64,000 nucleotides of DNA from Caecitellus pseudoparvulus (GCA_965644315.1 CBFFRQ010000079.1:1-64000); one strand, 5' to 3'. Shown: positions 5,543 through 35,500, counted from the first letter of the stretch. The notes: generated by a model from the sequence alone, not told the origin. Made by a program: numbers and translations.

Positions 5543-8500
5543 TCAAATCAAGTCTTTCAGGCTCGAAAACTTAGCTGCTTGTTGCCGCACAGTGTCTGGG
5601 ACTCTGCGAACGTCAGTCAGGCCCAGCAGCTCACGCACGATGTCTGTGTGGTCCATGGCGCATGCCCCTCGGAAGCCAGCCTCAGGCCCATCCCCATCCG
5701 CTGCGTGCACATCCACCTCCCGCGCCCCAGTCAGGCCCAGCAGCTCACGCACGATGTCTGTGTGGCCATTGTCGCATGCCCATCGGAAGCCAGCCTCAGG
5801 TCCACCCCAAGCCGCCGCGTGCACATCCACCTCCCGCGCCCCAGTCAGGCCCAGCAGCTCACGCACGATGTCTGTGTGGCCATAGCGGCATGCCTTTCGG
5901 AAGCCAGCCTCAGGCCCACCCCCATCCGCTGCGTGCACATCCACCTCCCGCGCCCCAGTCAGGCCCAGCAGCTCACGCACGATGTCTGTGTGGCCATAGC
6001 CGCATGCCCATCGGAAGCCAGCCTCAGGTCCACCCCCATCCGCCGCGTGCACATCCACTGCCCGTGCCCCAGTCAGACCCAGCAGCTCACGCACGATGTC
6101 TGTGTGGCCAAAGGCGCATGCCACTCGGAAGGCGGCCTCAGGTCCAAACACATCCGCCGCATGCACATCCACCTCCCGCGCACCAGTCAGGCTCAGCAGC
6201 TCACGCACGATGTCTGTGTGGCCCCTGGTGCAGGCCCATCGGAAAGCGGCCTCAGGGCCCTGTTGGTGAAACCCAGGCAAGACCTCAACATTTCCTTCCG
6301 CATGTACATCCACTGCCTCATCCCCCGTCAATGACAGCAACTCGCGCACTCTCGCAAGCTCCTCCTCCTTGCACGCTTCCACAAACGCTGTGGTGTTCTC
6401 CTCGCTGAACTTCACTTGCTCGGCAGCAACCTCCGACTCTGTAGCCGGTACAGCCTCAGCTTGAGCTGCCTCAGCCTGACCTGCCGCGCCACCTGCCTGC
6501 TCACCATCAAGCACACTCCGCACAGCACTCTCCACACCTTCCAGACGACCCACTTCACCCCCACTTCCTTCACATGCCATCGCATATGCACCCATGCAGC
6601 AACCACTCCCTCCCCGCCCCAACACCTCCAACGCGCTCGTCAGTGCATGCTCATCACCTTCACCACTGCCCACGAAGCTCGACACAGCGCCCGATCCACC
6701 ACCCAACGCACCACCTGCCACACCAAGCACCTCACGCAGCACACCCGACACACTTCCACCCTCGCCATCACCGCTGCCGCCTTCAGAGCGACCTGTGTCA
6801 CACACACCGCCACATGCACCCAGCACCACCTCACACCCACCCCCATCCAGTGCGCCCACCAGATCACCCACACTGCCACTCCTCACACCCACCACCACAA
6901 AGCTCCCCACACCCACACCACTCAGACTCACTCCGCACGCCTCCGCCACAGCACACACACCCAACACCCTCACAGCCACGCGCTGCTTCACATCCAGCCC
7001 AACATCGCCCCACGCTTCATCCTCCAGGAACACCCTCAGCGGCCACCCCGCCTCACACTGCACCTGCACCGTCACCATGCTCCTCTGGCCGAGTGGCTCA
7101 TCAGCCCTGCCTGCTGTACTGCTGTGTGCCAGTGCTGCTCTGCGTGGTGTCTGTGCCATCCGCGGTAGTCCATGCGCGATGCGAGTCGCTTCGCCACGTT
7201 TCACAGCGCCAACACTCGTGGCAAGGGCTGTCACACCCGCCTCCACACTCGCTGCCCACTGCTCCACATCCCCAGCTCCACCCACATCCTCATCCACGAT
7301 CTCAACCCTCCCACTGTACACACTCACACCCTTGCCATTCATGCACTCCAAGCCGCTCGACAAGTCCAAGCCACACACAGCCTTCACCTTCCGACCACTC
7401 ATCACCGGCGCACACCCCAACAGCCCACGCAACTCCTCCACTGCACTCGCAGCACACTCCAAGTGCTTCGCGGCACTCTCACTCCTCAGATCGCCTGCCG
7501 CCTCGCCTCGCAGCCAACCAGCCTGCTGCCGCATGCCAGCCAGAGCCGCATCCATCGCTGCCTCGCCACTGGCATCATGTGTGACTGAGCCACCCTCACC
7601 AGCCACAGCCACCTCCCCCCCCTCGAAGCCTTGCCACCATCGCGTCAGGTCAGCCAGCGCACCCTCCACATTCACACCGCTCCGCACACTGCTCCAAGCA
7701 CCCACAATGGCGCCCCACAGAGCGTCCCCCTCCGGCACTGCATCGGCACTCACACCAGACACCGCTGTATGAAGCACATCCACCGCGCAGAAGCACCGGA
7801 ACGACAGGTACTGCAGCGCAGCACACACACCACCTCGCTCACGCTGCCCCGCCAACAGCCCAGCCTGCTCCAACAGCGCACTCCCCGCATCACGCAGTGC
7901 AGCCTCCAGCTCCACCAGGCTCATGGCCGATGGGGCGTCATCACCTGCAGCATGCACTTCGCCACGCCCAATGGCTGCCAGTCCGAGGTTGCCGGCACCC
8001 CAGCCGGCAACCATGTTTCCCGGCAGGAGGGGCGGCGGGCAGTCCCACGCTAGTGGCACAATTGTCCCCCGCCGCCCCAACGCAGAGTAGACGACGGCAG
8101 GACCGGGCATGACAAAACCAGTCATTAGCCGGCCTCGTCACTCTCTTTCCTTTTTTTTCGAGATGGCATCGGATGATCCAGCTTCCAGCGACACGGAGGG
8201 CGGAAGCTGGGAGGACATCCACGACAAAATGATGTCTGTCAACTCCGCCAAGCAAGCCAAGGCGCTCATAACGGAGCAGGAGTTCGAGTACTGGCTGAAG
8301 TGGGCGGATTCTGAGGATTTTGGTAAGATGGAGGCCGCTTGGCGCCTCCGGGAGGTGCCCGAGGGATTCCGGGCAGATCGCATGCGATCCCTCATTGCGG
8401 GCAGAGCTTTCCGCCTCCCCGCTGACGGTGCCCCTCATCGCGCAGGCGGCTCACCACGGGGGCACGGCACGAAGCGAACCCGTCCGCGCGGTGCGAGCAG

Positions 8501-11500
8501 TGGCACGCCCTACGGCCCGCACCTACCCCCGCGCCCGACCCAGCCGGACGCAGTCGCAGGCGACCTCCCGCAAGATCCCGCCACAGTGCTTACGTGGTTC
8601 CTGCAGAGGGGAGCGACGGTGCCGAGCGAGGACGTCGCCGTGCAGCTGCAGTTCTACGTGGGCTTGGCAACGGAGGAGACATCGCCGTACGCCCTCTCCG
8701 CTTGGCCTCCACGGCGCTTCGCCGCATGGTGCAGACTCAACGGTATTCCCCCCGACCTCACCCCCGACGACATCGTGATGCATTTGCAGCGGGTCCTGGA
8801 GGCCGCGCTGGCGGGCGACGACGACTTTGGCGACGACGATGCCGGCGCCCCGTTCTTTCCCGTTTTCCCGGGCACCACACCGGATGCCGCCCGGTTACAG
8901 CCCCGTGCGGCGGCCCCGGGTCACCCCCCGGCCTCCAAGAGGCACAGGGCGGCCTATAGCCCGCAGCCCCCCTCCCCCGTGGGGCGGCGGAGCCTCGCCG
9001 GCAGTCCACCCCGAAGGCGGGTCGGCTGTTTTCGGTCACATGGGGGAGAACAGCGGTCGGTCGTCGCCAGCCGACGAGGTACTGGTCACTGTAGGCGCGC
9101 TGCGGGTCATTGGGCCGACCGCACACCCCTCGTCGGCGGTGGCCCGGGACCGCCTGTCAGCCTTGGGGGCAGTTTTCGCTGCGGGGACCACAGACGCCTT
9201 GACCACGGTGGCTGTCGAGATGGCTGAGGCTGCTGCACGAGAGGTGCCCGCAGCAACGGGCCCAGTGCCGTCAGGTACGTTCCTGTCCCGCCAGCTCCCC
9301 CACTCGCCCCGCGTGCCCGCTCCCGGCGACCCGTCCTGGCTCACAGCCCCCGGCGATGAGGTAGCCCCGCCGTCCGCGTCGGTCATGATGGACGACGCTA
9401 TGGACGTAGTGACTGCTGTACGCCTGGTGCAAGGGAGGGTGGAAGTTACAGTTGACCCAACCCATCTAGTGGCAGTAACTGGGGCGGGTGCCCTGTCGGC
9501 ATGCCACATGCTGGGCAACCGTGGGGGCGCTTGGTGGCTTGCTGCGATGACCAGGGACTTGCTGACGGCGCCTTCCGACGACCTCCACCGCTCCCTCCGA
9601 GCGTTCTGGTGGAAGTGGGCGTCCGAGGTGCCCGCCCTGGCAGACCAGCGGGGCCTGTGCCGAGCCATGGCGTGCGCACTCCTGATCACAATCGCAGTGC
9701 GGGCCGTGGCGCAGACCGCCGCTGCGTTGCCCGAAGGCCAGCGCAGGCGATGGGCCCAGCTGACGTGGGCCTCCTGGGTGGCCACGTTCCGCACTAACGC
9801 CACCATTGTCATGATGGCGTCGGCGACGGGGCAAGCACTGGTGGCCAGCTCGCTGGCGCGCGAGGCATGGGCGGCCGGGGCCGCCGCCACACCGATGCCA
9901 GGTGCGGGGGGCGGCCCGGCGCAAACCCCCGCTCGTGGCCCTCCCGCGGGGCTGTACCGGCAGGACGACCCGAGCACATTCGTGTGGTGCCCCGGGTGCG
10001 TCGGATCCGACCGGCGGCGCCGGTCGCTGGCATCCTGCCCACGCCTGGCCCAGCATGTGGCCCACCTGCGCCGGACCCACACAGTCGGAGGTAAGCCCGC
10101 AGAACTTACCCAGGCGCAGGCAGTGGCCATGCTGGTGCGCCAGTGGGAGCGGAAGGTGGCATCCAAGGGACGTGACTTCCAGCGGCGCATGCAGCCCCGC
10201 GCTGTCACCACGGCCATGGTGGAGGCAGCTCTCAGCCTCTAGGAGGTGGGCCGGAGCGCGGTGGTGAGAGCGACCACGGGGTACCGGGCCGTGCCCGTGG
10301 AGTGGAGGGCTGCCGCCCCGCTCTCGACAGACCACCGCGCCATGGCCGTGCTCATCGAATCAATGGTCCAGCAGCTGCATGGGGACCGTTGTTGGACTCC
10401 ACCGGGGCTCTTCGAGGACATCTTGCGTGGGGGCTTGGACTGGGGCCCCCACCCCGTGGTCTCATACTGGGGTTGCCAGGAGGCCCACGCTGACGTGTGT
10501 CCCGCATGCGGCGAGACCACTTCCAGATTACGGCAGCTTGAGCGGTGCGCAGCCATGCGACTGCTCACCGTGGTCACGCTGCGCGGGTGGGACCCCGCTT
10601 GGCTGCTGTTCCGCCGCCCCCCGGCAGCGGCATCCCCGTCCTCGGCATACGTGCTGCAGCCGCACGACGAGCGGGCGGTGGCAGCGGCCTATGACGCCTT
10701 CGCGGCTGCGCGCGTGCTGCAGCCGGTCACCCCCCAGCAGCTGCAGCAGCACCGAAAGATGGGGGGCCAGCCGCTTCTGCCTTCGTTGTCACGACATGGG
10801 CCCCCCAGCCGGGCGTCAGCGACGAAGCTCTGCGACAGTGGGCTGCTGCGAACCCAGGCGAGGCGGTGCAGGCCGCCAGCTCTTCCCGCGCGCCCGCCCG
10901 CCCGAGCCGCCTGTTCCGGGCCAAGCAGCGGGTGGTGTACGATCTGGCAGCCGTCAACCAGGCCTCAGTGAGCCCCCCATTCCACTACCCCACGCTGGAG
11001 AGCTGGGCGCTGCGCCTCCCGCCGAACTCGGACTGTGTTGTCCTGGACGTGGAAGCAGGGTACACGGCCATCCCCATCGCTCCGTCGGGCGCCGGACTGT
11101 TCACCATGCTCGCCCAGGGCAGGCCAGCCTTCCGCATGCTTCGGATGGCCTTCGGGTACAGCCCGGCCGGGGCCATTTTCTGCTTTTTTTCTGGACTTCT
11201 GGGCGCCAAGATCGAAGCGGCGTTCCCAGCAGGGCATGTGGTTGTGTACGTAGACGACGTCGGGCTTGGGGGAGCTACGTTGGGGCCACGGCCATCGATC
11301 GTGCCCAAGATAACTCAACTGTTCGAGGACGTGGGCTTCCGGGTGTCGCGCAAGAAGACGCAAGGGCCACAGCGCGTCGTTCAGTACTTGGGGATGGTGG
11401 TCAGGTGTGCCCCGTGTGGGGTGTACCTTGAGTGTCCTCAAGCCAAACGAACTCAGCTGCGGTGGCAGCTGGCCGCGGTCCTTAATCGCCTCGGCGCTTG

Positions 11501-14052
11501 CTCCACCATCCCCAAGCGCGTTTTCGCCGCGGTCACAGGGCGCTTGCACGGCCTGTCGGCCGTGGTGCCCCACGCAAAACAAACGCTGTCGCTCTTGTAC
11601 GACACCATGCGCACACACAAGTACCGCGTCGGCCCCCCGGCGCTCTCGTGCCTGTCCCCCCGGCGTCGCACGGGGCCCTGCGGACCCTCCTTGAGGCCCT
11701 CGGTGGGCCGTTATCGACGGGCCCGATGCGCCCGCTCTCCCCACTGTCAAGCAGGTGGCGCGCCGCCCTCTTTGGCTCGTGCGACGCGTCGGGGGAAGGC
11801 GGGCTGGGGGCAACAGTGTCGAGGTGGGCAGGGCCAGGAGAACGCACAGACTCCGCTTGGTACGCGTCCATGCGCATCCCCGGCACAGCCCCGGGCGAGG
11901 AGCTCGTGGGAGCCTCCACGATGCTGGAGCTGTACGCAATCGCCTTGGCTATGGCAATGGCGCGGCATGTTTTTCCCGAGCCGGGGCCGCTGCTGCTATG
12001 CCTAGCTGCGGACAGCCAGGCAGCGGTGGCGCTGGCGCGACGAGGGTACAGCAAGCACAGCCGTGAACTCACGCGCGTCTGCGGGGTCCTCGAGCGGGTT
12101 TCCCGCGTTTTGGACGTCCACTTGGCGCCTCGGTGGATCCCGAGGAGCCTGAAGTGGCGGGCGGACGCCCTCAGCCACCCCGAAAGGGTGGATAGCAGCA
12201 CACCGGCAGCGCTCGGCCTCCCGCCAGGGCAACCAGCCGAGCTGGAGGTATCAGCAGGGGGAAGCAGCGCCGCTGAGCGGTGGCATGATGTGTCCCTAGA
12301 CGTAGGGCCGTCGGGAAAGGCCGGGGCGGGCACCGCGTGGATTCACTCAGCTCAACTCTCCGTCGCCCTGCACAGACACACTCTGGATAAGGAAGCAGAC
12401 CTTCTGGCAGATGATCAGGGCCATCCCCGCGTCCCCGATCAGCAGGATTCACCAACATAGGCTGGCAAAGGGGACGGTGGTCAAGTACGTTCGCGCGGTT
12501 GCTGGCCTGATCAGGGCCGCTCCAGCACCCCGGGACAGGGCGCGGACCATGGTGGGCATCTTAACGGGCGGCGTGGCCGCAGGCAGATGGGCCCCCCATC
12601 GGGCGAAGCAGATCCTGGCGCAATGGGTCGGTGGTTTTAGGTATCTGGGCCTGCCAATCCCGTCGCTAGCCCCGCTGGGGCTCACAGTCGGCAGCATCTG
12701 CCGGGCAATCCGCCGGCTCCACCGAGGGAGAGGGGAGCAACACCGCCGCCCTATCAGCAAAGAACAAGTCATGGAGGCCATGAAGCGGGCATGGGACGGG
12801 CCACACCTCGGGAGGCATGCCCCAACTGCCGCCGCAGCTATCTACATCGGCTTTCATGGCATGTGCAGGCCGGGAGAGCTCCGGGGCCTGCGATGGGAGG
12901 AGTTGCACTTCGGGCGGGCGGGCCCCCTGCAGTGGGTGGAGGCCAGGGTCACGGATAAAACGCACCTGAGTGCAAACCGCCACATCCAGGTGGTGCGCCA
13001 GGCCGAGTGGGCGGGGGCCTTCGACCGCCTCCGGGAGCAGGCCCGGGACAAGCGGGGAAGCCTGCTCCCAAGGTGGGCGTGGCTCAGCCTGCAAGGCATC
13101 CTGAAGGCTGTAGCGGGCGTGTCCTTGGCCCACCTGAGACCCGGGGGCAATATGTTCTGGACAGGCCGGGCCCCCGACGTCTTGGTGGAGCACGCGGCGG
13201 GCTGGGCGGCTGGCTCCCCCACCCGGGCACGATACTACACCCAGGGGGGGAGGGGGCGAGGCTGTGGCACGAGGCCATGACACCCAGGGGAGGAAGCAAG
13301 CATTGAAAAGTATTGGCGGGTGCCGCAAGGAGGCGTCCCCTCCCCCAAGAGATGCAGCGAGCCCTGGTGGCCGCTGGCATAGAGGGGGGAGGGGACGGCC
13401 TCGAGGCGGGCCCAGTTCAATGCATTTCGATTGCCACGCACAACGCACCAACACGAGGGAACCGAGGTTGCCGGCACCCCAGCCGGCAACCATGTTTCCC
13501 GGCAGGAGGGGCGGCGGGCAGTCCCACGCTAGTGGCACAATTGTCCCCCGCCGCCCCAACGCAGAGTAGACGACGGCAGGACCGGGCATGACAAAACCAG
13601 TCATTAGCCGGCCTCGTCACTCTCTTTCCTTTTTTTTTCTTTTTCTCGATTGGCGGGTGCCGCAAGGAGGCGTCCCCTCCCCCAAGAGATGCAGCGAGCC
13701 CTGGTGGCCGCTGGCATAGAGGGGGGAGGGGACGGCCTCGAGGCGGGCCCAGTTCAATGCATTTCGATTGCCACGCACAACGCACCAACACGAGGGAACC
13801 TCGCAGTGCAGGGCCGTGGTCCATGACGCTGCCCGGCAAGCACTGCATCTTGCCCAAGCATGCCGCCACCACCTCCGCCTGCTTGTCGTCGGTGCCTGTA
13901 GTGGGTGGTGCACTGCGCTCCATGACTTGTCTTGTTGCTGCTGCCTGAGGCGTGGGGGACGGGCAGGGCGCTGTGTGCTGTGGTGTGTGTGCGACATGCT
14001 CTGTCGCAAGTGCTGGCGAAAGCGAGGCACCATGCCTACACCCACGCACCAT
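5543..14052 (-). CDS. Ankyrin-repeat paralog ANK1 (cap + 6 x 38-aa repeats), 5' region split by Ngaro copy 1 (host parts 5543-7982 and 13799-14052)
   Basis: GPEAxFRxACxxGHTDIVRELLGLTGAREVDVHAADxx repeats. Host sequence gccagt|cctcgcag is continuous in the paralog at ~30070. The Met shared by all four paralogs (MSLVELE) is at 7924, just downstream of the insertion. Confidence 0.85.
8164..10242 (+). CDS. Ngaro ORF1 (gag-like), apparent frameshift in C-run ~8967
   Basis: ORFs 8109-9227 and 8827-10242 join in frame if the C8 run of copy 2 is used. C-terminal WCPGC..C..H..H cluster. Confidence 0.7.
10243..12460 (+). CDS. Ngaro ORF2: reverse transcriptase + RNase H (breaks at homopolymers ~10761 and ~11633)
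   Basis: RT motifs KQRVVYDL, VLDVEAGYTAIPI, MAFGYSPA, YVDD, VQYLG. RNase H motifs CDASGEGGLG, LELYAI, ADSQAA, WIPRSL.WRADALS. Confidence 0.9.
12411..13280 (+). CDS. Ngaro ORF3: tyrosine recombinase
   Basis: GFHGMCRPGEL (catalytic R), DKT, AHLRPGG, AGW..SPTRARYY (catalytic Y). The 3' end is uncertain because of a G-run. Confidence 0.9.
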   Translation: MIRAIPASPISRIHQHRLAKGTVVKYVRAVAGLIRAAPAPRDRARTMVGILTGGVAAGRWAPHRAKQILAQWVGGFRYLGLPIPSLAPLGLTVGSICRAIRRLHRGRGEQHRRPISKEQVMEAMKRAWDGPHLGRHAPTAAAAIYIGFHGMCRPGELRGLRWEELHFGRAGPLQWVEARVTDKTHLSANRHIQVVRQAEWAGAFDRLREQARDKRGSLLPRWAWLSLQGILKAVAGVSLAHLRPGGNMFWTGRAPDVLVEHAAGWAAGSPTRARYYTQGGRGRGCGTRP

Positions 14053-16059: not shown

Positions 16060-16715
16060 AGGGGTGGGGCAATGCACGCGTGGGAGCGGTGGGTGTGGGG
16101 AGATGTTGCTGAGGTGTGTTGTTGAGTCTTGTGAGGTGGATTTGGGTGTGGTGTGTGCTGGTGTGGAGGTGGGTGTCAGGTTTGCCACATGGTGAATTTC
16201 CCTCGTGTTGGTGCGTTGTGCGTGGCAATCGAAATGCATTGAACTGGGCCCGCCTCGAGGCCGTCCCCTCCCCCCTCTATGCCAGCGGCCACCAGGGCTC
16301 GCTGCATCTCTTGGGGGAGGGGACGCCTCCTTGCGGCACCCGCCAATCGAGAAAAAGAAAAAAAAAGGAAAGAGAGTGACGAGGCCGGCTAATGACTGGT
16401 TTTGTCATGCCCGGTCCTGCCGTCGTCTACTCTGCGTTGGGGCGGCGGGGGACAATTGTGCCACTAGCGTGGGACTGCCCGCCGCCCCTCCTGCCGGGAA
16501 ACATGGTTGCCGGCTGGGGTGCCGGCAACCTCGGTTCCCTCGTGTTGGTGCGTTGTGCGTGGCAATCGAAATGCATTGAACTGGGCCCGCCTCGAGGCCG
16601 TCCCCTCCCCCCTCTATGCCAGCGGCCACCAGGGCTCGCTGCATCTCTTGGGGGAGGGGACGCCTCCTTGCGGCACCCGCCAATACTTTTCAATGCTTGC
16701 TTCCTCCCCTGGGTG

Positions 16716-17588
16716 TCATGGCCTCGTGCCACAGCCTCGCCCCCCCCCCCCCCCCTGGGTGTAGTATCGTGCCCGGGTGGGGGAGCCAGCCGCCCAGCCC
16801 GCCGCGTGCTCCACCAAGACGTCGGGGGCCCGGCCTGTCCAGAACATATTGCCCCCGGGTCTCAGGTGGGCCAAGGACACGCCCGCTACAGCCTTCAGGA
16901 TGCCTTGCAGGCTGAGCCACGCCCACCTTGGGAGCAGGCTTCCCCGCTTGTCCCGGGCCTGCTCCCGGAGGCGGTCGAAGGCCCCCGCCCACTCGGCCTG
17001 GCGCACCACCTGGATGTGGCGGTTTGCACTCAGGTGCGTTTTATCCGTGACCCTGGCCTCCACCCACTGCAGGGGGCCCGCCCGCCCGAAGTGCAACTCC
17101 TCCCATCGCAGGCCCCGGAGCTCTCCCGGCCTGCACATGCCATGAAAGCCGATGTAGATAGCTGCGGCGGCAGTTGGGGCATGCCTCCCGAGGTGTGGCC
17201 CGTCCCATGCCCGCTTCATGGCCTCCATGACTTGTTCTTTGCTGATAGGGCGGCGGTGTTGCTCCCCTCTCCCTCGGTGGAGCCGGCGGATTGCCCGGCA
17301 GATGCTGCCGACTGTGAGCCCCAGCGGGGCTAGCGACGGGATTGGCAGGCCCAGATACCTAAAACCACCGACCCATTGCGCCAGGATCTGCTTCGCCCGA
17401 TGGGGGGCCCATCTGCCTGCGGCCACGCCGCCCGTTAAGATGCCCACCATGGTCCGCGCCCTGTCCCGGGGTGCTGGAGCGGCCCTGATCAGGCCAGCAA
17501 CCGCGCGAACGTACTTGACCACCGTCCCCTTTGCCAGCCTATGTTGGTGAATCCTGCTGATCGGGGACGCGGGGATGGCCCTGATCAT
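16716..17588 (-). CDS. Ngaro copy 2 tyrosine recombinase
   Basis: Same protein as 12411-13280 apart from G-run length. Confidence 0.9.
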   Translation of the reverse strand: MIRAIPASPISRIHQHRLAKGTVVKYVRAVAGLIRAAPAPRDRARTMVGILTGGVAAGRWAPHRAKQILAQWVGGFRYLGLPIPSLAPLGLTVGSICRAIRRLHRGRGEQHRRPISKEQVMEAMKRAWDGPHLGRHAPTAAAAIYIGFHGMCRPGELRGLRWEELHFGRAGPLQWVEARVTDKTHLSANRHIQVVRQAEWAGAFDRLREQARDKRGSLLPRWAWLSLQGILKAVAGVSLAHLRPGGNMFWTGRAPDVLVEHAAGWAAGSPTRARYYTQGGGGGRGCGTRP

Positions 17589-19756
17589 CTGCCAGAAGGT
17601 CTGCTTCCTTATCCAGAGTGTGTCTGTGCAGGGCGACGGAGAGTTGAGCTGAGTGAATCCACGCGGTGCCCGCCCCGGCCTTTCCCGACGGCCCTACGTC
17701 TAGGGACACATCATGCCACCGCTCAGCGGCGCTGCTTCCCCCTGCTGATACCTCCAGCTCGGCTGGTTGCCCTGGCGGGAGGCCGAGCGCTGCCGGTGTG
17801 CTGCTATCCACCCTTTCGGGGTGGCTGAGGGCGTCCGCCCGCCAATTCAGGCTCCTCGGGATCCACCGAGGCGCCAAGTGGACGTCCAAAACGCGGGAAA
17901 CCCGCTCGAGGACCCCGCAGACGCGCGTGAGTTCACGGCTGTGCTTGCTGTACCCTCGTCGCGCCAGCGCCACCGCTGCCTGGCTGTCCGCAGCTAGGCA
18001 TAGCAGCAGCGGCCCCGGCTCGGGAAAAACATGCCGCGCCATTGCCATAGCCAAGGCGATTGCGTACAGCTCCAGCATCGTGGAGGCTCCCACGAGCTCC
18101 TCGCCCGGGGCTGTGCCGGGGATGCGCATGGACGCGTACCAAGCGGAGTCTGTGCGTTCTCCTGGCCCTGCCCACCTCGACACTGTTGCCCCCAGCCCGC
18201 CTTCCCCCGACGCGTCGCACGAGCCAAAGAGGGCGGCGCGCCACCTGCTTGACAGTGGGGAGAGCGGGCGCATCGGGCCCGTCGATAACGGCCCACCGAG
18301 GGCCTCAAGGAGGGTCCGCAGGGCCCCGTGCGACGCCGGGGGGACAGGCACGAGAGCGCCGGGGGGCCGACGCGGTACTTGTGTGTGCGCATGGTGTCGT
18401 ACAAGAGCGACAGCGTTTGTTTTGCGTGGGGCACCACGGCCGACAGGCCGTGCAAGCGCCCTGTGACCGCGGCGAAAACGCGCTTGGGGATGGTGGAGCA
18501 AGCGCCGAGGCGATTAAGGACCGCGGCCAGCTGCCACCGCAGCTGAGTTCGTTTGGCTTGAGGACACTCAAGGTACACCCCACACGGGGCACACCTGACC
18601 ACCATCCCCAAGTACTGAACGACGCGCTGTGGCCCTTGCGTCTTCTTGCGCGACACCCGGAAGCCCACGTCCTCGAACAGTTGAGTTATCTTGGGCACGA
18701 TCGATGGCCGTGGCCCCAACGTAGCTCCCCCAAGCCCGACGTCGTCTACGTACACAACCACATGCCCTGCTGGGAACGCCGCTTCGATCTTGGCGCCCAG
18801 AAGTCCAGAAAAAAAGCAGAAAATGGCCCCGGCCGGGCTGTACCCGAAGGCCATCCGAAGCATGCGGAAGGCTGGCCTGCCCTGGGCGAGCATGGTGAAC
18901 AGTCCGGCGCCCGACGGAGCGATGGGGATGGCCGTGTACCCTGCTTCCACGTCCAGGACAACACAGTCCGAGTTCGGCGGGAGGCGCAGCGCCCAGCTCT
19001 CCAGCGTGGGGTAGTGGAATGGGGGGCTCACTGAGGCCTGGTTGACGGCTGCCAGATCGTACACCACCCGCTGCTTGGCCCGGAACAGGCGGCTCGGGCG
19101 GGCGGGCGCGCGGGAAGAGCTGGCGGCCTGCACCGCCTCGCCTGGGTTCGCAGCAGCCCACTGTCGCAGAGCTTCGTCGCTGACGCCCGGCTGGGGGGCC
19201 CATGTCGTGACAACGAAGGCAGAAGCGGCTGGCCCCCCCATCTTTCGGTGCTGCTGCAGCTGCTGGGGGTGACCGGCTGCAGCACGCGCGCAGCCGCGAA
19301 GGCGTCATAGGCCGCTGCCACCGCCCGCTCGTCGTGCGGCTGCAGCACGTATGCCGAGGACGGGGATGCCGCTGCCGGGGGGCGGCGGAACAGCAGCCAA
19401 GCGGGGTCCCACCCGCGCAGCGTGACCACGGTGAGCAGTCGCATGGCTGCGCACCGCTCAAGCTGCCGTAATCTGGAAGTGGTCTCGCCGCATGCGGGAC
19501 ACACGTCAGCGTGGGCCTCCTGGCAACCCCAGTATGAGACCACGGGGTGGGGGCCCCAGTCCAAGCCCCCACGCAAGATGTCCTCGAAGAGCCCCGGTGG
19601 AGTCCAACAACGGTCCCCATGCAGCTGCTGGACCATTGATTCGATGAGCACGGCCATGGCGCGGTGGTCTGTCGAGAGCGGGGCGGCAGCCCTCCACTCC
19701 ACGGGCACGGCCCGGTACCCCGTGGTCGCTCTCACCACCGCGCTCCGGCCCACCTC
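17539..19756 (-). CDS. Ngaro copy 2 RT/RNase H (homopolymer frameshifts)
   Basis: YVDD RT motif in ORF 17994-19241; RNase H in ORF 17539-18501 with NWRADALS. Confidence 0.9.
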
Positions 19757-22043: not shown

Positions 22044-25000
22044 TCAAATCAAGGCTATCAGGGTCTCAAGCTTGGCAGCTCGCAGCCGCACACTGACTGG
22101 GATCCTGCGATCGCCAGTCAGACCCATCAGCTCACGCACGATATCGAGGTGGCCATAGAAACATGCCATTTGGAAGGCGGCCTCGGGCCCATCCTCATCC
22201 GCCGCGTGCACATTCACCTCGCGCGCCCCAGTCAGAGCCAGCAGCTCACGCACGACGTCTGTGTGGCCCCAGCGGCATGCCCCTCGGAAGGCGGCCTCAG
22301 GCCCATTCTTGTCCGCCGCGTGCACATTCACTTTGCGCGCCCCAGTCAGAGCCAGCAGCTCACGCACGACGTCTGTGTGGCCCCAGCGGCATGCCCCTCG
22401 GAAGGCGGCCTCAGGCCCATTCTTGTCCGCCGCGTGCACATTCACTTTGCGCGCCCCAGTCAGAGCCAGCAGCTCACGCACGACGTCTGTGTGGCCCCAG
22501 CGGCATGCCCCTCGGAAGGCGGCCTCAGGTCCACCCTTGTCCGCCGCGTGCACATTCACTTTGCGCGGCCCGGTCAGGCCCAGCAGCTCACGCACGACGT
22601 CTGTGTGGCCATTGGCGCATGCCTCTCGGAAGGCAGCCTCAGGTCCACCCTTATCCGCAGCATGCACATCCACTGCCTGCGCCCCAGTCAGGCTCAACAG
22701 CTCACGCACGATGTCGAGGTGGCCACTGCGGCATGCCAATCGGAAGGCAGCCTCAGCTCCATACTTATCCGCCGCGTGCACATCCACTTCACGCGCCCCT
22801 TTGAGTGCCAGCAGCTCACGCACGACGTCTGTGTGGCCATTGGCACATGTCCACCGGAACGTGGCCTCCGTCCGATCCCCATCCGCCGCGTGCACATTCA
22901 CTTTGCGCGCCCCAGTCAGAGCCAGCAGCTCACGCACGATGTCTGTGTGGCCCCAGCGGCATGCCGCTCGGAAGGCGGCCTCGGGCCCATCCTCATCCGC
23001 CGCGTGCACATTCACCTCGCGCGCCCCAGTCAGAGCCAGCAGCTCACGCACGATGTCTGTGTGGCCCCAGCGGCATGCTTCTCGGAAGGTGGCTGTATGC
23101 CCCCACCCATCCGCCGCGTGCACATTCACTTTGCGCGCCCCAGTCAGAGCCAGCAGCTCACGCACGATGTCTGTGTGGCCCCAGCGGCATGCCCCTCGGA
23201 AGGCGGCCTCAGGCCCATTCTTGTCCGCCGCGTGCACATTCACTTTGCGCGCCCCAGTCAGAGCCAGCAGCTCACGCACGACGTCTGTGTGGCCCCAGCG
23301 GCATGCCCCTCGGAAGGCGGCCTCAGGCCCATTCTTGTCCGCCGCGTGCACATTCACTTTGCGCGCCCCAGTCAGAGCCAGCAGCTCACGCACGATGTCT
23401 GTGTGGCCCCAGCGGCATGCCCCTCGGAAGGCGGCCTCAGGTCCACCCTTGTCCGCCGCGTGCACATTCACCTCGCGCGCCCCAGTCAGAGCCAGCAGCT
23501 CACGCACGACGTCTGTGTGGCCCCAGCGGCATGCCCCTCGGAAGGCAGCCTCGGGCCCAAAACTATAGATGAACCACCCAGTTTTAACTGTCTCCGCCGC
23601 ATGCACATCCACTGCCTCATCCCCCGTCAACACAAGCAGCTCACGCACTCTCGCAAGCTTCCCATCCTTGCACGCTTCCACAAACTCAGCGGTGTTCTCC
23701 TCACTGGACCCCACTTGCCCAGGGGAGTGCCCTGCCTCCGCCTGAGCTACACCATCAGCTGCCTGCTCCCCATCGAGCACACTCCGCACAGCACTGTCCA
23801 CACCTGACAGACGTCCCACTCCACCCCCACTTCCCTCACACGCCATTGCGTATGCCCCCATGCAGCAACCACTCCCTCCTCGCCCCAAAACCTCCAACGC
23901 CCTCGACAGTGCATGCTCACCACCTTCACCGCTGCCCACGAAAACTGAACCCACGCCCGATCCGCCACCAAGCGCACCACCTCCCACACCAAGCACCTCA
24001 CGCAGCACACCTAACACACCACCACCGTCACCATCAGAGCGACCTGTGCCCCACACACCGCCACACGCACTCAACACCACCTCACACCCACCTCCATCCA
24101 GTGCCCCCACCAGGTCACCCACACTGCCACTCCTCACACCCACCACCACAAAGCTCCCCACACTCACACCACTCAGACTCACTCCACACGCCTCCGCCAC
24201 AGCACACACACCCAGCACCCGCACAGCCACTCGCTGCTTCACATCCAGCCCAGTATCGCTCAACGCTTCATCCTCCAGGAACACCCTCAGCGGCCAACCC
24301 ACCTCACACAGTACCTGCACTGTGACACTGCTCCTCTCGCCAACTGGCTCATCAGCCCTGCCGCCTCCACATATGTGATTCAACGCTGCTCTGCGTGGAG
24401 TCTGCGCCATCCGGGGAAGTCCATGGGCGATGCGAGCCGCTTCGCCACGCTTCACAGCGCCAACACTCGTGGTAAGGGCCCTCGCACCCGCCTCCACACT
24501 TGCTGCCCATTGCTCCACATCCCCAGATCCACCCACATCCTCATCCACGATCTCAGCCCGTCCACTGTACACACTCACTCCATTGCCGTTCAGGCACTCC
24601 AAGCCGCCCGACAAGTCCAACCCACCCACAGCCTTCACCTTCCGACCACTCATCACCGGCGCACACACCAAAAGACCACGCAGCTCCTCCACCGCACTCG
24701 CTGCACTCTCCAAGTGCTCCGCAGCACTCTCACTCCTCAGCTCGCCTGCCGCCTCGCCTCGCAGCCAATCAGCCTGCTGACGCATGCCAGCCAGGGCCAC
24801 ATCCACCGCTGCTTCGCCACTGGCATCATGTGTGACTGGGCCACCCTCACCAGCCACATCCACATCTGCCGCCTCGAAGCCTTGCCACCATCGCGTCAGG
24901 TCAGCCAGCGCACCCTCCACATTCACACCACTCCGCACACTGCCCCAAGCACCCACAATGGCGCCCCACAGTGCGTCGCCCTCCGGCACTGCATCAACAT

Positions 25001-25355
25001 CCACACCGCTAGCCGCCTGATGCAGCACATCCACCGCGCAGAAGCACCGAAACGACAGGTACTGCAGCGCAGCACACACACCACCTCGCTCACGCTGTCC
25101 TGCCAACAGCCCAGCCTGCTCCAACAGCGCACTCCCCGCATCACGCAGTGCAGCCTCAAGCTCCACCAGGCTCATGGTCGATGGGGCGTCAGCTGCAACA
25201 GGCGCTTCGCCACGCCCAATGGCTGCCAGTCCTCTCAGTGCTGGGCCGTGGTCCGTGACGCTGTCCGGCAAGCACTTCATCTTGCGCAAGCATGCCGCCA
25301 CCGCCTCAGCCTGTGTGTCATCGATGCCTGCAGTGGCTGATGCAGCGCCCTCCAT
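22044..25355 (-). CDS. Ankyrin-repeat paralog ANK2 (cap + 13 repeats)
   Basis: 1103-aa uninterrupted ORF; 114-bp tandem repeats at ~22120-23560. Confidence 0.9.
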   Translation of the reverse strand: MEGAASATAGIDDTQAEAVAACLRKMKCLPDSVTDHGPALRGLAAIGRGEAPVAADAPSTMSLVELEAALRDAGSALLEQAGLLAGQRERGGVCAALQYLSFRCFCAVDVLHQAASGVDVDAVPEGDALWGAIVGAWGSVRSGVNVEGALADLTRWWQGFEAADVDVAGEGGPVTHDASGEAAVDVALAGMRQQADWLRGEAAGELRSESAAEHLESAASAVEELRGLLVCAPVMSGRKVKAVGGLDLSGGLECLNGNGVSVYSGRAEIVDEDVGGSGDVEQWAASVEAGARALTTSVGAVKRGEAARIAHGLPRMAQTPRRAALNHICGGGRADEPVGERSSVTVQVLCEVGWPLRVFLEDEALSDTGLDVKQRVAVRVLGVCAVAEACGVSLSGVSVGSFVVVGVRSGSVGDLVGALDGGGCEVVLSACGGVWGTGRSDGDGGGVLGVLREVLGVGGGALGGGSGVGSVFVGSGEGGEHALSRALEVLGRGGSGCCMGAYAMACEGSGGGVGRLSGVDSAVRSVLDGEQAADGVAQAEAGHSPGQVGSSEENTAEFVEACKDGKLARVRELLVLTGDEAVDVHAAETVKTGWFIYSFGPEAAFRGACRWGHTDVVRELLALTGAREVNVHAADKGGPEAAFRGACRWGHTDIVRELLALTGARKVNVHAADKNGPEAAFRGACRWGHTDVVRELLALTGARKVNVHAADKNGPEAAFRGACRWGHTDIVRELLALTGARKVNVHAADGWGHTATFREACRWGHTDIVRELLALTGAREVNVHAADEDGPEAAFRAACRWGHTDIVRELLALTGARKVNVHAADGDRTEATFRWTCANGHTDVVRELLALKGAREVDVHAADKYGAEAAFRLACRSGHLDIVRELLSLTGAQAVDVHAADKGGPEAAFREACANGHTDVVRELLGLTGPRKVNVHAADKGGPEAAFRGACRWGHTDVVRELLALTGARKVNVHAADKNGPEAAFRGACRWGHTDVVRELLALTGARKVNVHAADKNGPEAAFRGACRWGHTDVVRELLALTGAREVNVHAADEDGPEAAFQMACFYGHLDIVRELMGLTGDRRIPVSVRLRAAKLETLIALI

Positions 25356-27682: not shown

Positions 27683-30325
27683 TCAAATCAAGTCTTTCAA
27701 GCCCTCAAACTTGGCTGCTTGCTGCCGCACGCTGTCTGGGATCCTGCGGTGCCCCGTCAGGCCCAGCAGCTCACGCACGATGTCTGTGTGGCCCCAGCGG
27801 CATGCCACTCGGAAGCCAGCCTCAGGTCCATCCCATGCCGCCGCATGCACATCCACTTCCCGCGCCCCAGTTAGCCCCAGCAGCTCACGCACGATGTCTG
27901 TGTGGCCCCAGCGGCATGCCATTCGGAAGGCGGCCTCAGGTCCAGCCCCATCCGCCGCATGCACATCCACCTCCCGCGCCCCAGTCAGGCCCAGCAGCTC
28001 ACGCACGATGTCTGTGTGGCCATGGAGGCATGCCACTCGGAAGCCAGCCTCAGGTCCACCCCATGCCGCCGCATGCACATCCACCTCCCGCGCCCCAGTC
28101 AGGCCCAGCAGCTCACGCACGATGTCTGTGTGGCCATGGAGGCATGCCACTCGGAAGCCAGCCTCAGGTCCATCCCCATCCGCCGCATGCACATCCACTG
28201 CCCGCGCCCCAGTCAGGCCCAGCAGCTCACGCACGATGTCTGTGTGGCCCCTGGCGCATGCGCCTCGGAAAGCGGCCTCAGGTCCAGCCCCATCCGCCGC
28301 ATGCACATCCACCTCCCGTGCGCCGCTCAGGCCCAGCAGCTCACGCACGATGTCTGTGTGGCCAAAGGCGCATGCCACTCGGAAAGCGGCCTCAGGGCCC
28401 TGTCTGCAAAACCCATCCAGCACCTCAGCATTTCCTTCCGCATGTACATTCACTGCCTCATCCCCCGTCAACACAAGCAGCTCACGCACTCTCGCAAGCT
28501 TCCCATCCTTGCACGCTTCCACAAACTCAGCGGTGTTCTCCTCACTGGACCCCACTTGCCCAGGGGAGTGCCCTGCCTCCGCCTGAGCTACACCATCAGC
28601 TGCCTGCTCCCCATCGAGCACACTCCGCACAGCACTGTCCACACCTGACAGACGTCCCACTCCACCCCCACTTCCCTCACACGCCATTGCGTATGCCCCC
28701 ATGCAGCAACCACTCCCTCCTCGCCCCAAAACCTCCAACGCCCTCGACAGTGCATGCTCACCACCTTCACCGCTGCCCACGAAAACTGAACCCACGCCCG
28801 ATCCGCCACCAAGCGCACCACCTCCCACACCAAGCACCTCACGCAGCACACCTAACACACCACCACCGTCACCATCAGAGCGACCTGTGCCCCACACACC
28901 GCCACACGCACTCAACACCACCTCACACCCACCTCCATCCAGTGCCCCCACCAGGTCACCCACACTGCCACTCCTCACACCCACCACCACAAAGCTCCCC
29001 ACACTCACACCACTCAGACTCACTCCACACGCCTCCGCCACAGCACACACACCCAGCACCCTCACAGCCACTCGCTGCTTCACATCCAGCCCAGTATCGC
29101 TCAACGCTTCATCCTCCAGGAACACCCTCAGCGGCCAACCCACCTCACACAGTACCTGCACTGTGACACTGCTCCTCTCGCCAACTGGCTCATCAGCCCT
29201 GCCGCCTCCACATATGTGATTCAATGCTGCTCTGCGTGGAGTCTGCGCCATCCGCGGCAGGCCATGGGCGATGCGAGTCGCTTCGCCACGTTTCACAGCG
29301 CCAACACTCGTGGCAAGCGCTGTCGCACCCGCCTCCACACTTGCTGCCCATTGCTCCACATCCCCAGATCCACCCACATCCTCATCCACGATCTCAGCCC
29401 GTCCACTGTACACACTCACTCCATTGCCGTTCAGGCACTCCAAGCCGCCCGACAAGTCCAAGCCACCCACAGCCTTCACCTTCCGACCACTCATTGCAGG
29501 CGCACACCCCAACAGACCACGCAGCTCCTCCACTGCACTCGCTGCACACTCCAAGTGCTCCGCAGCACTCTCACTCCTCAGATCGCCTGCCGCCTCGCCT
29601 CGCAGCCAACCAGCCTGCTGACGCATGCTGGCCAGAGCCGCATCCATCGCTGCCTCGCCACTGGCATCATGCGTGACGGGGCCACCCTCACCAGCCACAT
29701 CCACATCCGCCGCCTTCAAGCCTTGCCACCATCGCGTCAGATCAGCCAGCGCACCCTCCACGTTCACACCGGCCCGCACACTGCCCCAAGCACCCACAAT
29801 GGCGCCCCAAAGTGCGTCCCCCTCCGGCACTGCATCAACACTCACACCAGATGCCGCCTGATGAAGCACATCCACCGCGCAGAAGCACCGGAACGACAGG
29901 TACTGCAGCGCAGCACACACACCACCTCGCTCACGCTGCCCCGCCAACAGCCCAGCCTGCTCCAACAGCGCACTCCCCGCATCACGCAGTGTAGCTTCCA
30001 GCTCCACCAGGCTCATGGTCGATGGGGCGTCGCCTGCAACAGGCGCTTCGCCACGCCCAATGGCTGCCAGTCCTCGCAGTGCTGGGCCATGGTCCATGAC
30101 GCTGCCCGGCAAGCACTTCATCTTGCCCAAGCATGCCGCCACAACCTCAGCCTGCTTGCCGTCGATGCCTGCAGTGGGCGCTGCACTGCCCTCCACGGCT
30201 TGGCCTGTTGCTGCTGCCTGAGGCGTCGGGGAGGGGCAGGGCGTTGTGTGCTGGCCAGTGTGTGCGACACGCTCTGTCGCAAGTGCTGGCGAAAGCGAGG
30301 CACCATGCCCACACCCACGCACCAT
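27683..30325 (-). CDS. Ankyrin-repeat paralog ANK3 (cap + 6 repeats)
   Basis: 880-aa ORF; 114-bp repeats at ~27760-28400. Confidence 0.9.
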   Translation of the reverse strand: MVRGCGHGASLSPALATERVAHTGQHTTPCPSPTPQAAATGQAVEGSAAPTAGIDGKQAEVVAACLGKMKCLPGSVMDHGPALRGLAAIGRGEAPVAGDAPSTMSLVELEATLRDAGSALLEQAGLLAGQRERGGVCAALQYLSFRCFCAVDVLHQAASGVSVDAVPEGDALWGAIVGAWGSVRAGVNVEGALADLTRWWQGLKAADVDVAGEGGPVTHDASGEAAMDAALASMRQQAGWLRGEAAGDLRSESAAEHLECAASAVEELRGLLGCAPAMSGRKVKAVGGLDLSGGLECLNGNGVSVYSGRAEIVDEDVGGSGDVEQWAASVEAGATALATSVGAVKRGEATRIAHGLPRMAQTPRRAALNHICGGGRADEPVGERSSVTVQVLCEVGWPLRVFLEDEALSDTGLDVKQRVAVRVLGVCAVAEACGVSLSGVSVGSFVVVGVRSGSVGDLVGALDGGGCEVVLSACGGVWGTGRSDGDGGGVLGVLREVLGVGGGALGGGSGVGSVFVGSGEGGEHALSRALEVLGRGGSGCCMGAYAMACEGSGGGVGRLSGVDSAVRSVLDGEQAADGVAQAEAGHSPGQVGSSEENTAEFVEACKDGKLARVRELLVLTGDEAVNVHAEGNAEVLDGFCRQGPEAAFRVACAFGHTDIVRELLGLSGAREVDVHAADGAGPEAAFRGACARGHTDIVRELLGLTGARAVDVHAADGDGPEAGFRVACLHGHTDIVRELLGLTGAREVDVHAAAWGGPEAGFRVACLHGHTDIVRELLGLTGAREVDVHAADGAGPEAAFRMACRWGHTDIVRELLGLTGAREVDVHAAAWDGPEAGFRVACRWGHTDIVRELLGLTGHRRIPDSVRQQAAKFEGLKDLI

Positions 30326-32500: not shown

Positions 32501-32509
32501 AGCTTGGGA

Positions 32510-35500
32510 TCAAATCAACTCCTTCAAGCTCTCAAACTTGGTGGCTTCCTGTCGCACGCTGTCTGGGATCCTGCGGTGCCCCGTCAGACCCAGCAGCTCA
32601 CGCACGATGTCTGTGTGGCCCCAGCGGCATGCCACTCGGAAGCCAGCCTCAGGGCCAAACCGATCCGCCGCATGCACATCCACTGCCCGCGCCCCAGTCA
32701 GGCCCAGCAGCTCACGCACGATGTCTGTGTGGCCATTGCGACATGCCAGTCGGAAGCCAGCCTCAGGGCCATACTTATCCGCTGCGTGTACATCCACTGC
32801 CCGCGCCCCAGTGAGGCCCAGCAGCTCACGCACGATGTCTGTGTAGCCCCAGCGGCATGCCAGTCGGAAGCCAGCCTCAGGTCCACGACCATCCGCCGCA
32901 TGCACATCCACCTCCCGCGCACCAGTCAGACCCAGCAGCTCACGCACGACATCTGTGCGGCCATGGAGGCATGCCACTCGGAAGCCAGCCTCAGGTCCAT
33001 CCCCATCCGCTGCGTGCACATCCACTGCCCGCGCACCAGTCAGGTCCAGCAGCTCACGCACGATGTCGCTGTGGCCATTGCGGCATGCCCATCGGAAGCC
33101 AGCCTCAGGCCCATCCCCATCCGCTGCATGCACATCCACTGCCCGCGCACCAGTCAGGTCCAGCAGCTCACGCACGATGTCGCTGTGGCCATTGCGGCAT
33201 GCCAATCGGAAGGCGGCCTCAGGTCCATCCTCATCCGCCGCATGCACATCCACTGCCCGCGCCCCAGTGAGGCCCAGCAGCTCACGCACGATGTCTGTGT
33301 AGCCCCAGCGGCATGCCAGTCGGAAGCCAGCCTCAGGTCCACGACCATCCGCCGCATGCACATCCACCTCCCGCGCACCAGTCAGACCCAGCAGCTCACG
33401 CACGACATCTGTGCGGCCATGGAGGCATGCCACTCGGAAGCCAGCCTCAGGTCCATCCCCATCCGCTGCGTGCACATCCACTGCCCGCGCACCAGTCAGG
33501 TCCAGCAGCTCACGCACGATGTCGCTGTGGCCATTGCGGCATGCCCATCGGAAGCCAGCCTCAGGCCCATCCCCATCCGCTGCATGCACATCCACTGCCC
33601 GCGCACCAGTCAGGTCCAGCAGCTCACGCACGATGTCGCTGTGGCCATTGCGGCATGCCAATCGGAAGGCGGCCTCAGGTCCATCCTCATCCGCCGCATG
33701 CACATCCACCTCCCGCGCCCCAGTCAGACCCAGCAGCTCACGCACGATGTCTGTGTGGCCATTGATACATGCCACTCGGAAAGCGGCCTCAGGGCCCTGT
33801 TTTTGAAACCCAGGCAAGACCTCAACACTTCCTTCCGCATGTACACTCACTGCCTTATCCCCCGTCAATGACAGCAACTCGCGCACTCTCGCAAGCTCAC
33901 CCTCCTTGCACGCTTCCACAAACGCTGTAGTGTTCTCCTCGCTGAATGTCTCCAGCTCAGGGACTTGATCGGCAGCAATCTCCGACTCTGTAGCCGGTAC
34001 AGCCTCTGCGTCAGCTGTCTCCGCTTGACCTGCCGCACCACCTGCCTGCTCACCATCAAGCACACTCCGCACCGCACTTTCCACACCTTCCAAATGACCC
34101 ACTCCACCCCCACTTCCTTCACACGCCATCGCATATGCACCCATACAGCAACCACTCCCTCCCCGCCCCAACACCTCCAACGCACTCGTCAGTTCAAGCT
34201 TTACACCTTCACCACTGCTCACGAAGCTCGACACAGCGCTCGAGTCGCCACCCAACGCACCACCGTCCACACCAAGCACCTCACGCAGCACACTCAACAC
34301 ACCACCACCCTCACCACCACCGGTGCTTCCGTCCGAGCGACCTGTGTCACACACACCGCCACATGCACTCAACACCACCTCACACCCACCCCCATCCAGT
34401 GCGCCCACCAGATCACCCACACTGCCACTCCCCACACCCACCACCACAAAGCTCCCCACACCCACACCATCCAGACTCACTCCACACGCCTCCGCCACAG
34501 CACACACACCCAGCACCCTCACAGCCACGCGCTGCTTCACATCCAGCCCGACATCGCCCCACGCTTCATCCTCCACGAACACCCTCAGCGGCCACCCCGC
34601 CTCACACTGCACCTGCACCGTCACCATGCTCCTCTGGCCGAGTGGCTCATCAGGTCGGCCCGCTGTACAACTGTGAGCCAGTGCTGCTCTGCGTGGCGTC
34701 TGCGCCATCCGCGGCAGGCCATGGGCGATGCGAGCCGCTTCGCCACGCTTCACGGCGCCAACACTCGTGGTAAGCGCTGCCGCACCCGCCTCCACAGTCC
34801 CTGCCCACTGCTCCACATCCCCAGCTCCACCCACATCTTCATCCACGATCTCAACCCTCCCACTGTACACACTCACACCCTTGCCATTCAAACACTCCAC
34901 GCCGCTCGGCAAGTCCAACCCACGCACAGCCTTCACCTTCCGACCACTCATCACCGGCGCACACCCCAACAGCCCACGCAGTTCCTCCACCGCACTCGCT
35001 GCACTCTCCAAGTGCTCCGCAGCACTCTCACTCCTCAGATCGCCCGCCGCCTCGCCTCGCAGCCAATCAGCCTGCTGCCGCATGCCAGCCAGAGCCGCAT
35101 CCGCCGCTGCCTCACCACCAGCACCATGTGTGACGGGGCCACCCTGACCAGCTACATCCACATCCCCCCCCTCGAAGCCTTGCCACCATCGCGTCAGATC
35201 AGCCAGCGCACCCTCCACGTTCACACCGCTCCGTACATTGCTCCAAGCACCCACGATGGCGCCCCACAGTGCGTCGCCCTCCGGCACTGCATCCACATCC
35301 ACACCCGACACCGCCTGGTGCAGCACATCCACCGCGCAGAAGCACCGGAACGACAGGTACTGCAGCGCAGCACACACACCACCTCTCTCACGCTGCCCCG
35401 CCAACAGCCCAGCCTGCTCCAACAGCGCACTCCCCGCATCACGCAGTGCAGCCTCCAGCTCCACCAGGCTCATGGTTGATGGGGCGTCGCCTGCAACAGG

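Follow-up and report, generated by a model that had tools for sequence, protein, structure and literature searches.

Tandem repeats that are nearly identical except at a few codons have been described in fungi. They occur as ankyrin (ANK), TPR, or WD repeats of high internal conservation in NLR/STAND proteins such as the nwd/het-e/het-d family of Podospora anserina; in the ANK repeats, five positively selected positions map to the concave face that the inner helix and hairpin loop make up, and the repeats undergo concerted evolution (Dyrka et al. 2014, PMC4986451). Variation confined to a few codons also results from diversity-generating retroelements (DGRs), in which an RNA copy of an invariant template repeat enters a variable region and misincorporation takes place only at the adenines of the template (PMC7826257). 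The parts of a DGR are a dedicated reverse transcriptase (RT), usually accompanied by Avd, and these systems favor AAY codons, which cannot give stops (PMC7826257). Here we consider a stretch of 64,000 nucleotides from Caecitellus pseudoparvulus (GCA_965644315.1, CBFFRQ010000079.1:1-64000), hereafter the window, in which four paralogous genes each end in an array of ankyrin repeats with five hypervariable codons. These are codons 7, 10, 11, 36, and 37 in a numbering that gives 0 to the Gly of the Gly-Pro-Glu motif; their first two bases vary, and the third largely keeps one letter per site. This codon pattern is very probably the product of ordinary mutation and diversifying selection in a young repeat family, with recombination.

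Several properties are shared with the repeats of fungal NLR/STAND proteins, namely near-identical repeats in variable number, few codons under diversifying selection, shuffling of repeats within and between paralogues, and fusion of a signaling or effector module to a variable sensor (PMC4986451). The differences are that no NACHT or NB-ARC domain is found here, the N-terminal module being helical and kinase-like; that the repeat has 38 residues instead of 33; that the host is a protist and not a fungus; and that repeat-induced point mutation (RIP), the mutator proposed in Podospora, is not indicated. What we describe are receptor-like proteins whose repeats combine high internal conservation with diversifying selection, and what is new is the pseudokinase-type module and the protist host. 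In designed ankyrin repeat proteins (DARPins), attributed to Binz et al. 2003/2004, a fixed framework is said to be randomized in two places, the beta-turn that follows the Asp and the end of helix 1, ahead of Gly-His. By motif, sites 36/37 and 10/11 of the present repeats align with what we take to be DARPin positions 2/3 and 13/14. The present family differs in being natural, in having a fifth variable site one helical turn upstream in helix 1, and in the length of its unit, which by our own motif reading would exceed the 33-residue ankyrin consensus by five residues (one in the first half and four in the long loop).

The codon pattern in the window

The window derives from the nuclear genome of a GC-rich protist, for which the assembly has 30.6 Mb in 215 contigs. 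Across the 36 in-register repeat units of the window, codons 7, 10, 11, 36, and 37 vary at bases 1 and 2, with entropies of 1.15-1.68 bits, while base 3 is G, C, T (or G), G, and T, respectively, with entropies of 0.37, 0.00, 1.00 (bimodal, T/G), 0.80, and 0.67 bits. The first-pass annotation of this DNA had reported this NNG/NNC/NNT pattern at the variable ankyrin codons; it is real in the window, and the codon lists given for it are nearly exact. At codon 7 (site 1 of that annotation), GTG occurs 9 times, GGG 8, TGG 6, TTG and CTG 3 each, ATG twice, and AAG, GCG, and GAG once each; the GAA listed as the single exception to NNG is indeed there, but one GGC had been missed. Codon 10 (site 2), for which no exception had been seen, takes eight different forms, and all 36 units have NNC. 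Codon 11 (site 3) is NNT, or else TGG, AGG, or ATG. Codon 36 (turn 1) is mainly NNG and codon 37 (turn 2) mainly NNT, with the exceptions mostly in the C-terminal cap units. The annotation had also described the neighboring codons as nearly identical. Tandem Repeats Finder (TRF) recovers the 114-nt period at 5614-6256, 22114-23559, 27751-28396, and 32583-33793 with 87-91% matches, which places the repeats within each gene above ~85% identity. Base-3 diversity at the five codons is 0.16 (0.08 without site 3), compared with 0.20 at the silent sites of the scaffold. Base 3 in the window is conserved like all silent sites of the repeats, not specially.

The arrays belong to four paralogous, intron-free open reading frames (ORFs), all on the minus strand, each of which closes in a tandem array with a 114-nt period:

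5543-8125, minus strand: g1, ORF of 860 aa, with a helical and kinase-like N-terminal module, an N-cap, and six 38-aa units at 5576-6259
22044-25355, minus strand: g2, 1103 aa, with the N-terminal module and 13 units at 22077-23558
23640-25355, minus strand: N-terminal module of g2, 572 aa
27683-30325, minus strand: g3, 880 aa, with the N-terminal module and six units at 27716-28399
32510-35782, minus strand: g4, 1090 aa, with the N-terminal module and 11 units at 32543-33796
5576-33796, minus strand: the 36 in-register units of 114 nt (38 residues each), distributed over g1/g2/g3/g4 as 6/13/6/11

In a unit running from ws to we, codon c occupies positions we-3c-2 to we-3c on the minus strand. 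In each array an N-cap stands ahead of the units, and the last unit serves as the C-cap. All four proteins match Pfam ankyrin families, with E-values from 1e-17 to 4e-76; for Ank_2 the values run from 9e-17 to 4e-76.

Third-base memory across the genome

The conserved core 15-mer of the repeat has 1,344 matches in the genome, compared with 7 for its reversed control. At least 40 genome loci match most of a member gene, and the family comprises ~1,340 repeat units on at least 25 contigs. From 20 array-bearing loci (170 kb) plus the window, we collected 232 units whose scaffold identity is 80% or higher, and 225 of these are distinct; the genome statistics thus cover 232 of ~1,344 units, with loci L023 and L024 left out. 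Of the 294 units defined by the anchor, 189 agree with the scaffold consensus to 90% or better. A nucleotide-level constraint at the invariant GTGCGTGAGCTGCTG core, that is, the core 15-mer, was considered and set aside because the units of the sample were ascertained by that very anchor.

The per-base entropy calculation that the first-pass annotation had proposed over all genomic repeats was run on the 225 distinct units, and the pattern is present there in a weaker form than in the window. Base-3 entropy at sites 7, 10, 11, 36, and 37 is 0.98, 1.14, 1.20, 0.61, and 0.46 bits. Diversity is 0.578 at bases 1-2 of the hypervariable codons, 0.314 at their base 3, 0.197 at the four-fold third positions of the scaffold, and 0.078 at scaffold bases 1-2; the description of the third base as nearly fixed therefore holds in the window but not in this wider sample. 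At least 21-22 different codons occur per site, many of them singletons, and variation is also found at base 3 and at scaffold codons 4, 13, 22, and 28.

Synonymous codon choice is nevertheless specific to the site. Gly is GGG at sites 7 and 36, GGC at 10, and GGT at 37, and Ala is likewise GCG, GCC, and GCT at sites 7, 10, and 37; over four-fold codon boxes, the association of third base with site gives a chi-square of 632 (p 2e-127). Tyr at the NNG sites is TAC or TAT, and TAG was never seen. The major third base in four-fold boxes has a frequency of 0.75-0.97 at the five codons, and the range over 22 codons of the scaffold is 0.67-0.996. Third-base conservation follows that of the silent scaffold across bins of divergence (0.91/0.90, 0.89/0.905, and 0.84/0.87) and is lower in diverged units. 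The pattern is kept in a close relative, L021, and largely lost in a diverged subfamily, L022, both from a metagenome. The real signal is a third-base memory that is no stronger than at silent positions of the scaffold. Since this memory equals that of the silent scaffold and decays alike, the third base behaves as a silent site in a young family.

L021 and L022 are scaffolds of the metagenome assembly ENA ERZ23499096. One has 81% protein identity to g3; the other carries the more diverged subfamily and adjoins an HSP70 gene. The sample thus contains a related organism. The closest outside sequence is L021. Its identity to the best-matching locus of this genome is only 85%, and L021 is either a paralogue or comes from another species.

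Selection at the five codons

By the Nei-Gojobori method (NG86), the synonymous rate (dS) is 0.335 at the five codons and 0.294 in the scaffold, a ratio of 1.09 (bootstrap 0.73-1.63). The ratio of nonsynonymous to synonymous rates (dN/dS) is 2.9 at the five codons (bootstrap 2.05-4.43) and 0.26 in the scaffold, and positive selection is thus confined to a few codons per repeat. Third-base transversions are enriched where the residue changes, with a Mantel-Haenszel odds ratio of 2.8 (bootstrap 1.5-5.2, 21 source sequences). The direction is the same at four of the five sites, and site 10 alone gives 12.8 (p 3e-11). Base 3 therefore tracks amino-acid change, which would not be expected if bases 1-2 alone were the target of a mutator.

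A codon model of the Goldman-Yang (GY94) type on a star tree, calibrated to the silent diversity of 0.197, was compared with these values. With omega 6 and kappa 5, it gives 0.588 at bases 1-2 and 0.303 at base 3, compared with the observed 0.578 and 0.314; with omega 1, both diversities would be 0.196. Because a plain codon model fits both diversities, a special mechanism has nothing further to account for. Among 16 paralogues, the N-terminal module, which is not repeated, shows a four-fold-site difference of 0.164, near the silent value of 0.20 in the repeats; as silent divergence is alike in repeats and module, heavy homogenization is not required for the third bases to be conserved. Intense positive selection combined with homogenization had been offered as the conventional explanation. 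Its first half is borne out by the dN/dS of 2.9 and by the fit of the codon model, while homogenization is seen but is less needed than had been assumed.

Several observations weigh against ordinary mutation and selection as a full account. The dN/dS value was taken among recombining paralogous repeats, which can inflate it, and the 232-unit sample was picked through similarity to the g3 repeats and the anchor 15-mer (up to 2 mismatches). In the window, base-3 diversity without site 3 falls below the silent level, although this concerns only four sites. Pairs of units that differ at 1-2 of 99 scaffold nucleotides already differ at 2-3 of the 5 hypervariable codons, and where the scaffolds of a pair are exactly one nucleotide apart, 22 of the 55 codons that differ do so at two or three bases. 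The spectrum of single-step changes at bases 1-2 is also richer in transversions, with per-path transition:transversion ratios of ~0.7-3 compared with ~5 at silent sites. The fast divergence of near pairs can be explained by saturation, by reassortment, and by the choice of the lowest-distance pairs, but a fast mutator would give it as well. We hold that selection for radical replacements, saturation, and reassortment account for these counter-signals, and leave only a slim chance for an added mutational process.

Duplication and reassortment of units

Recent duplications are visible within the arrays. In g4, a four-unit block of 456 nt has been duplicated, and units 2-4 and 6-8 are 100% identical over 342 nt, which include 15 hypervariable codons. 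Units 5 and 9, the only pair in the duplication that is not identical, differ by a cluster of changes within 20 nt, comprising three silent changes at codons 31-33 and single-base changes in codons 36 and 37; the cluster resembles the junction of a duplication or recombination event and does not resemble point mutagenesis. In g2, units 1-4 and 10-12 are nearly identical, also at their hypervariable codons, and several are identical or one silent base apart. Since recent duplicates keep identical hypervariable codons, diversification is not obligatory.

Reassortment is equally apparent. Linkage falls within ~10 nt for hypervariable and scaffold polymorphisms alike and is strong only between the adjacent codons 10-11, 36-37, and 35-36; the haplotype GCA-TGG-GGT at codons 35-37 recurs in g1 and g3. 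The N-terminal modules of g2 and g3 (23640-25355 and 28610-30325) are 95% identical, whereas their arrays (22077-23558 and 27716-28399) are different scaffold variants and the g3 repeats resemble those of g1 and g4. This comparison points to recombination between module and array, with g3 as a mosaic. Repeat number ranges from 6 to 13 in the window genes and reaches 27 in L011 (G000:C165:1-3400), a small contig that is almost entirely one array and whose 27 anchor motifs form the longest run seen. It suggests that long arrays break the assembly.

Proposed origin of the pattern

The repeats would be recent descendants of one unit, with silent positions still ~90% conserved, every third base included. 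New residues at the five sites would arise by ordinary point mutation and be kept ~3-6 times faster than silent changes. Because changes at bases 1-2 almost always alter the residue and those at base 3 mostly do not, bases 1-2 would come near saturation while base 3 would still show the ancestral letter (G, C, T, G, and T). Unequal crossing-over, block duplication, and exchange between paralogues alter repeat number and reassort the variants.

In the repeat, sites 36/37 are predicted to sit in the hairpin turn after the conserved Asp, sites 10/11 to precede Gly-His at the end of helix 1, and site 7 to lie 3-4 residues upstream on the same helical face. Natural ankyrin proteins contact their ligands through these positions, which are also the ones under positive selection in the ankyrin repeats of fungal NLRs (PMC4986451). 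A solenoid of such units would present five variable residues per repeat on its concave face, forming a putative ligand-binding face, and the family may be regarded as a putative recognition repertoire. Selection for new specificities would then keep new residues, and the helical and pseudokinase module would transmit binding. The placement on the binding face comes from motif alignment and PMC4986451, and not from a confident structure of the array: an AlphaFold single-sequence model of the g3 array has helix pairs every 38 residues but is poor, with a predicted local distance difference test (pLDDT) of 62 and loops below 50, and was not used for placing the variable residues.

Alternative explanations

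The first-pass annotation had raised the possibility of a DGR-like targeted mutagenesis. In such a scheme, a DGR or a eukaryotic equivalent would rewrite the repeats from a template with AA at bases 1-2 of the five codons, and NNC, NNT, and NNG with a fixed third base are the expected product of AAY or AAG template codons (PMC7826257). Variation at bases 1-2 of a few codons with the third base retained, and variable residues on a binding surface held by an invariant scaffold, are indeed what is seen in DGRs of the Bordetella phage BPP-1 type. The AAG, AAT, and AAG-AAT states that had been pointed out do occur, AAT being the commonest codon at site 3, and an RT gene sits between g1 and g2. The template is what fails to appear. 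In the window, all 40 anchor-defined units fall inside the four genes, in agreement with the earlier remark that no template repeat is visible there; in the 30.6-Mb assembly, the search for a template copy found no unit with AA at sites 7, 10, and 11 under the strict pattern, and none among the 17 matches to the template pattern with 2 mismatches. The AAG-AAT turn occurs five times in the genome (four in g2), always in coding arrays with GGG, CGC, and TGG at the helix sites, and AA codons number three at most in any sampled unit. In the scaffold, 8 of the 16 consensus-A positions and 13 of the 15 consensus-T positions are conserved at 90% or more, which is incompatible with adenine mutagenesis on either strand; the first-pass annotation had likewise cited invariant scaffold adenines against a strict DGR. 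The residues at the five sites, taken together, depart widely from a random set (G 15%, R 13%, W 12%, and D 11%, with N and E also well represented), ~1,340 units at dozens of loci would all have to be targets, and NNG template codons would yield the TAG stops that DGRs avoid through AAY (PMC7826257). Avd (PF05635) has no match in the genome. The RT (RVT_1, 10866-12002) belongs to a 5.8-kb element, a putative Ngaro-type retrotransposon, present in two inverted copies (7983-13798 and 16198-22020) that are 100% identical. The family thus differs from DGRs in its want of template repeat, adenine specificity, and Avd, in having only a retrotransposon's RT nearby, and in consisting of ~1,340 repeats of ankyrin fold, not C-type lectin fold, in a eukaryotic nucleus. 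With the dS ratio of 1.09 and the undiversified duplicates added to this, we give the DGR explanation practically no credence.

A targeted hypermutation other than a DGR, for example through error-prone repair or polymerase recruitment, might add to selection at the five codons; the fast divergence and frequent multi-base differences of near-identical pairs would suit it, as would the transversion-rich spectrum at bases 1-2, and a REV1-like Y-family polymerase gene lies 22 kb off. However, the synonymous rate at the hypervariable codons is not raised, base 3 in four-fold boxes is as conserved as silent scaffold sites, third-base changes are enriched only where the residue alters, the plain codon model fits without an extra term, and recent duplicates are undiversified. 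Given the conserved base 3, a targeted process would have to hit bases 1-2 of five codons while sparing base 3 and the neighbors. The polymerase gene (57662-61672, plus strand) is a 1336-aa ORF with BRCT, IMS, IMS_HHH_1, IMS_C, and a weak UBM, matching a REV1-like translesion polymerase. REV1 is a universal single-copy eukaryotic gene, and the family is spread over at least 25 contigs against this single copy; as a mutator clue, the gene was rejected as a probable coincidence and is probably an ordinary housekeeping copy. We regard added hypermutation as very unlikely, and a programmed process as yet undescribed in eukaryotes, which would mutagenize just these positions or replace them from a template, in the germ line or in clonal cultures, and leave selection only to filter the output, as a shade less likely still. 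As unlikely as added hypermutation is the idea that there is no positive selection and that only neutral drift acts on the five positions, as surface residues without constraint in an otherwise constrained repeat. Repeat proteins do tolerate most substitutions at their surface, and recombination among repeats can inflate dN/dS, but neutral drift would give a dN/dS of ~1 and a diversity at bases 1-2 at the silent level of 0.20, compared with the observed 2.9 (lower bound 2.05) and 0.58, and the bias of the residues to W, R, D, N, G, and E is unlike mutation alone. Somewhat more room, though still little, is left for old variants. In this view each site has a limited set of ancient alleles, which short-tract gene conversion and unequal crossing-over only reassort, while new mutation contributes little. 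The recurrence of multi-codon haplotypes across genes, the restriction of strong linkage to adjacent codons, three-base differences (AAT and TGG) between units with near-identical scaffolds, and the conflicting genealogies of N-terminal module and array would all be accommodated. The number of codons per site, with its many singletons, stands against it, as does the third-base memory, which shows that most variants at each site go back to a single ancestral codon and arose during the lifetime of the family. Reassortment complements mutation and selection and does not replace them.

The N-terminal module

The 572-aa N-terminal module of g2 has no Pfam match at E-values up to 1. An AlphaFold model built with an alignment of 16 homologues has a pLDDT of 81.7 and a predicted template modeling score (pTM) of 0.81; modeled residues ~13-228 are helical, and ~228-510 adopt a protein-kinase-like fold. 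In two VIA-align runs, all of the top 50 matches were kinase or pseudokinase domains, with Z of 11-13.9, root mean square deviation (rmsd) of 3.3-4.7 Å, and ~199-252 aligned residues; they include MLKL, ALK, IRAK4, RIPK, and JAK JH2. Foldseek E-values are weak, at 3e-3 and above. A protein-atlas search with residues 1-230, the helical part, gave no usable match.

The likeness is closest to MLKL, JAK JH2, IRAK, and RIPK, with which residues ~228-510 align at Z 12-14 and rmsd 3.4-4.3 Å over 205-231 residues, and MLKL also has a helical region ahead of its kinase-like domain. The module differs from MLKL and the pseudokinases in a sequence identity of 6-13% and in lacking a Pfam kinase match. None of the VAIK, HRD..N, DFG, and APE motifs stands at conserved alignment positions in the 16 aligned members, and the kinase-like domain is probably a pseudokinase, apparently catalytically dead. 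Given fold matches to kinases only and no Pfam match in the module, these proteins would work like NLR-type receptors, yet are not NLRs. A role of the module in cell death would be speculation by analogy.

Surroundings of the gene cluster

The left copy of the 5.8-kb RVT_1 element, which begins at 7983, cuts into the 5' end of g1; the other copy, on the right, stops 24 nt from the stop codon of g2. The 2.4 kb between the copies is 92-93% identical to the g2/g3 and g3/g4 spacers and appears to be the usual intergenic spacer of the ankyrin genes. Three further genes were recorded in the window, the last two of them apparently ordinary genes downstream of the ankyrin cluster:

544-2346, plus strand: ORF with a DDE_Tnp_4 / Plant_tran transposase domain, Harbinger/PIF type
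42768-44735, plus strand: FG-GAP repeat, integrin-alpha-like protein
45577-47355, plus strand: seipin homologue

Significance

The claim of a first DGR-like diversifier in a eukaryote should be dropped, since the codon pattern is what strong diversifying selection in a young repeat family is expected to leave behind. Third-base memory offers a simple marker, which needs no alignment, of replacement that outruns silent change, and it could find similar repertoires elsewhere. In Caecitellus pseudoparvulus, it marks a large, putative repertoire of ankyrin binders in a protist, with ~1,340 units in dozens of genes and five fast-evolving, putative contact residues per repeat, fused to a helical and dead-kinase-like module in place of the nucleotide-binding switch that NLRs have. 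If this is a true recognition or immune repertoire, it would represent an independent invention of the fungal strategy of "highly conserved repeats" and a natural counterpart of a DARPin library.

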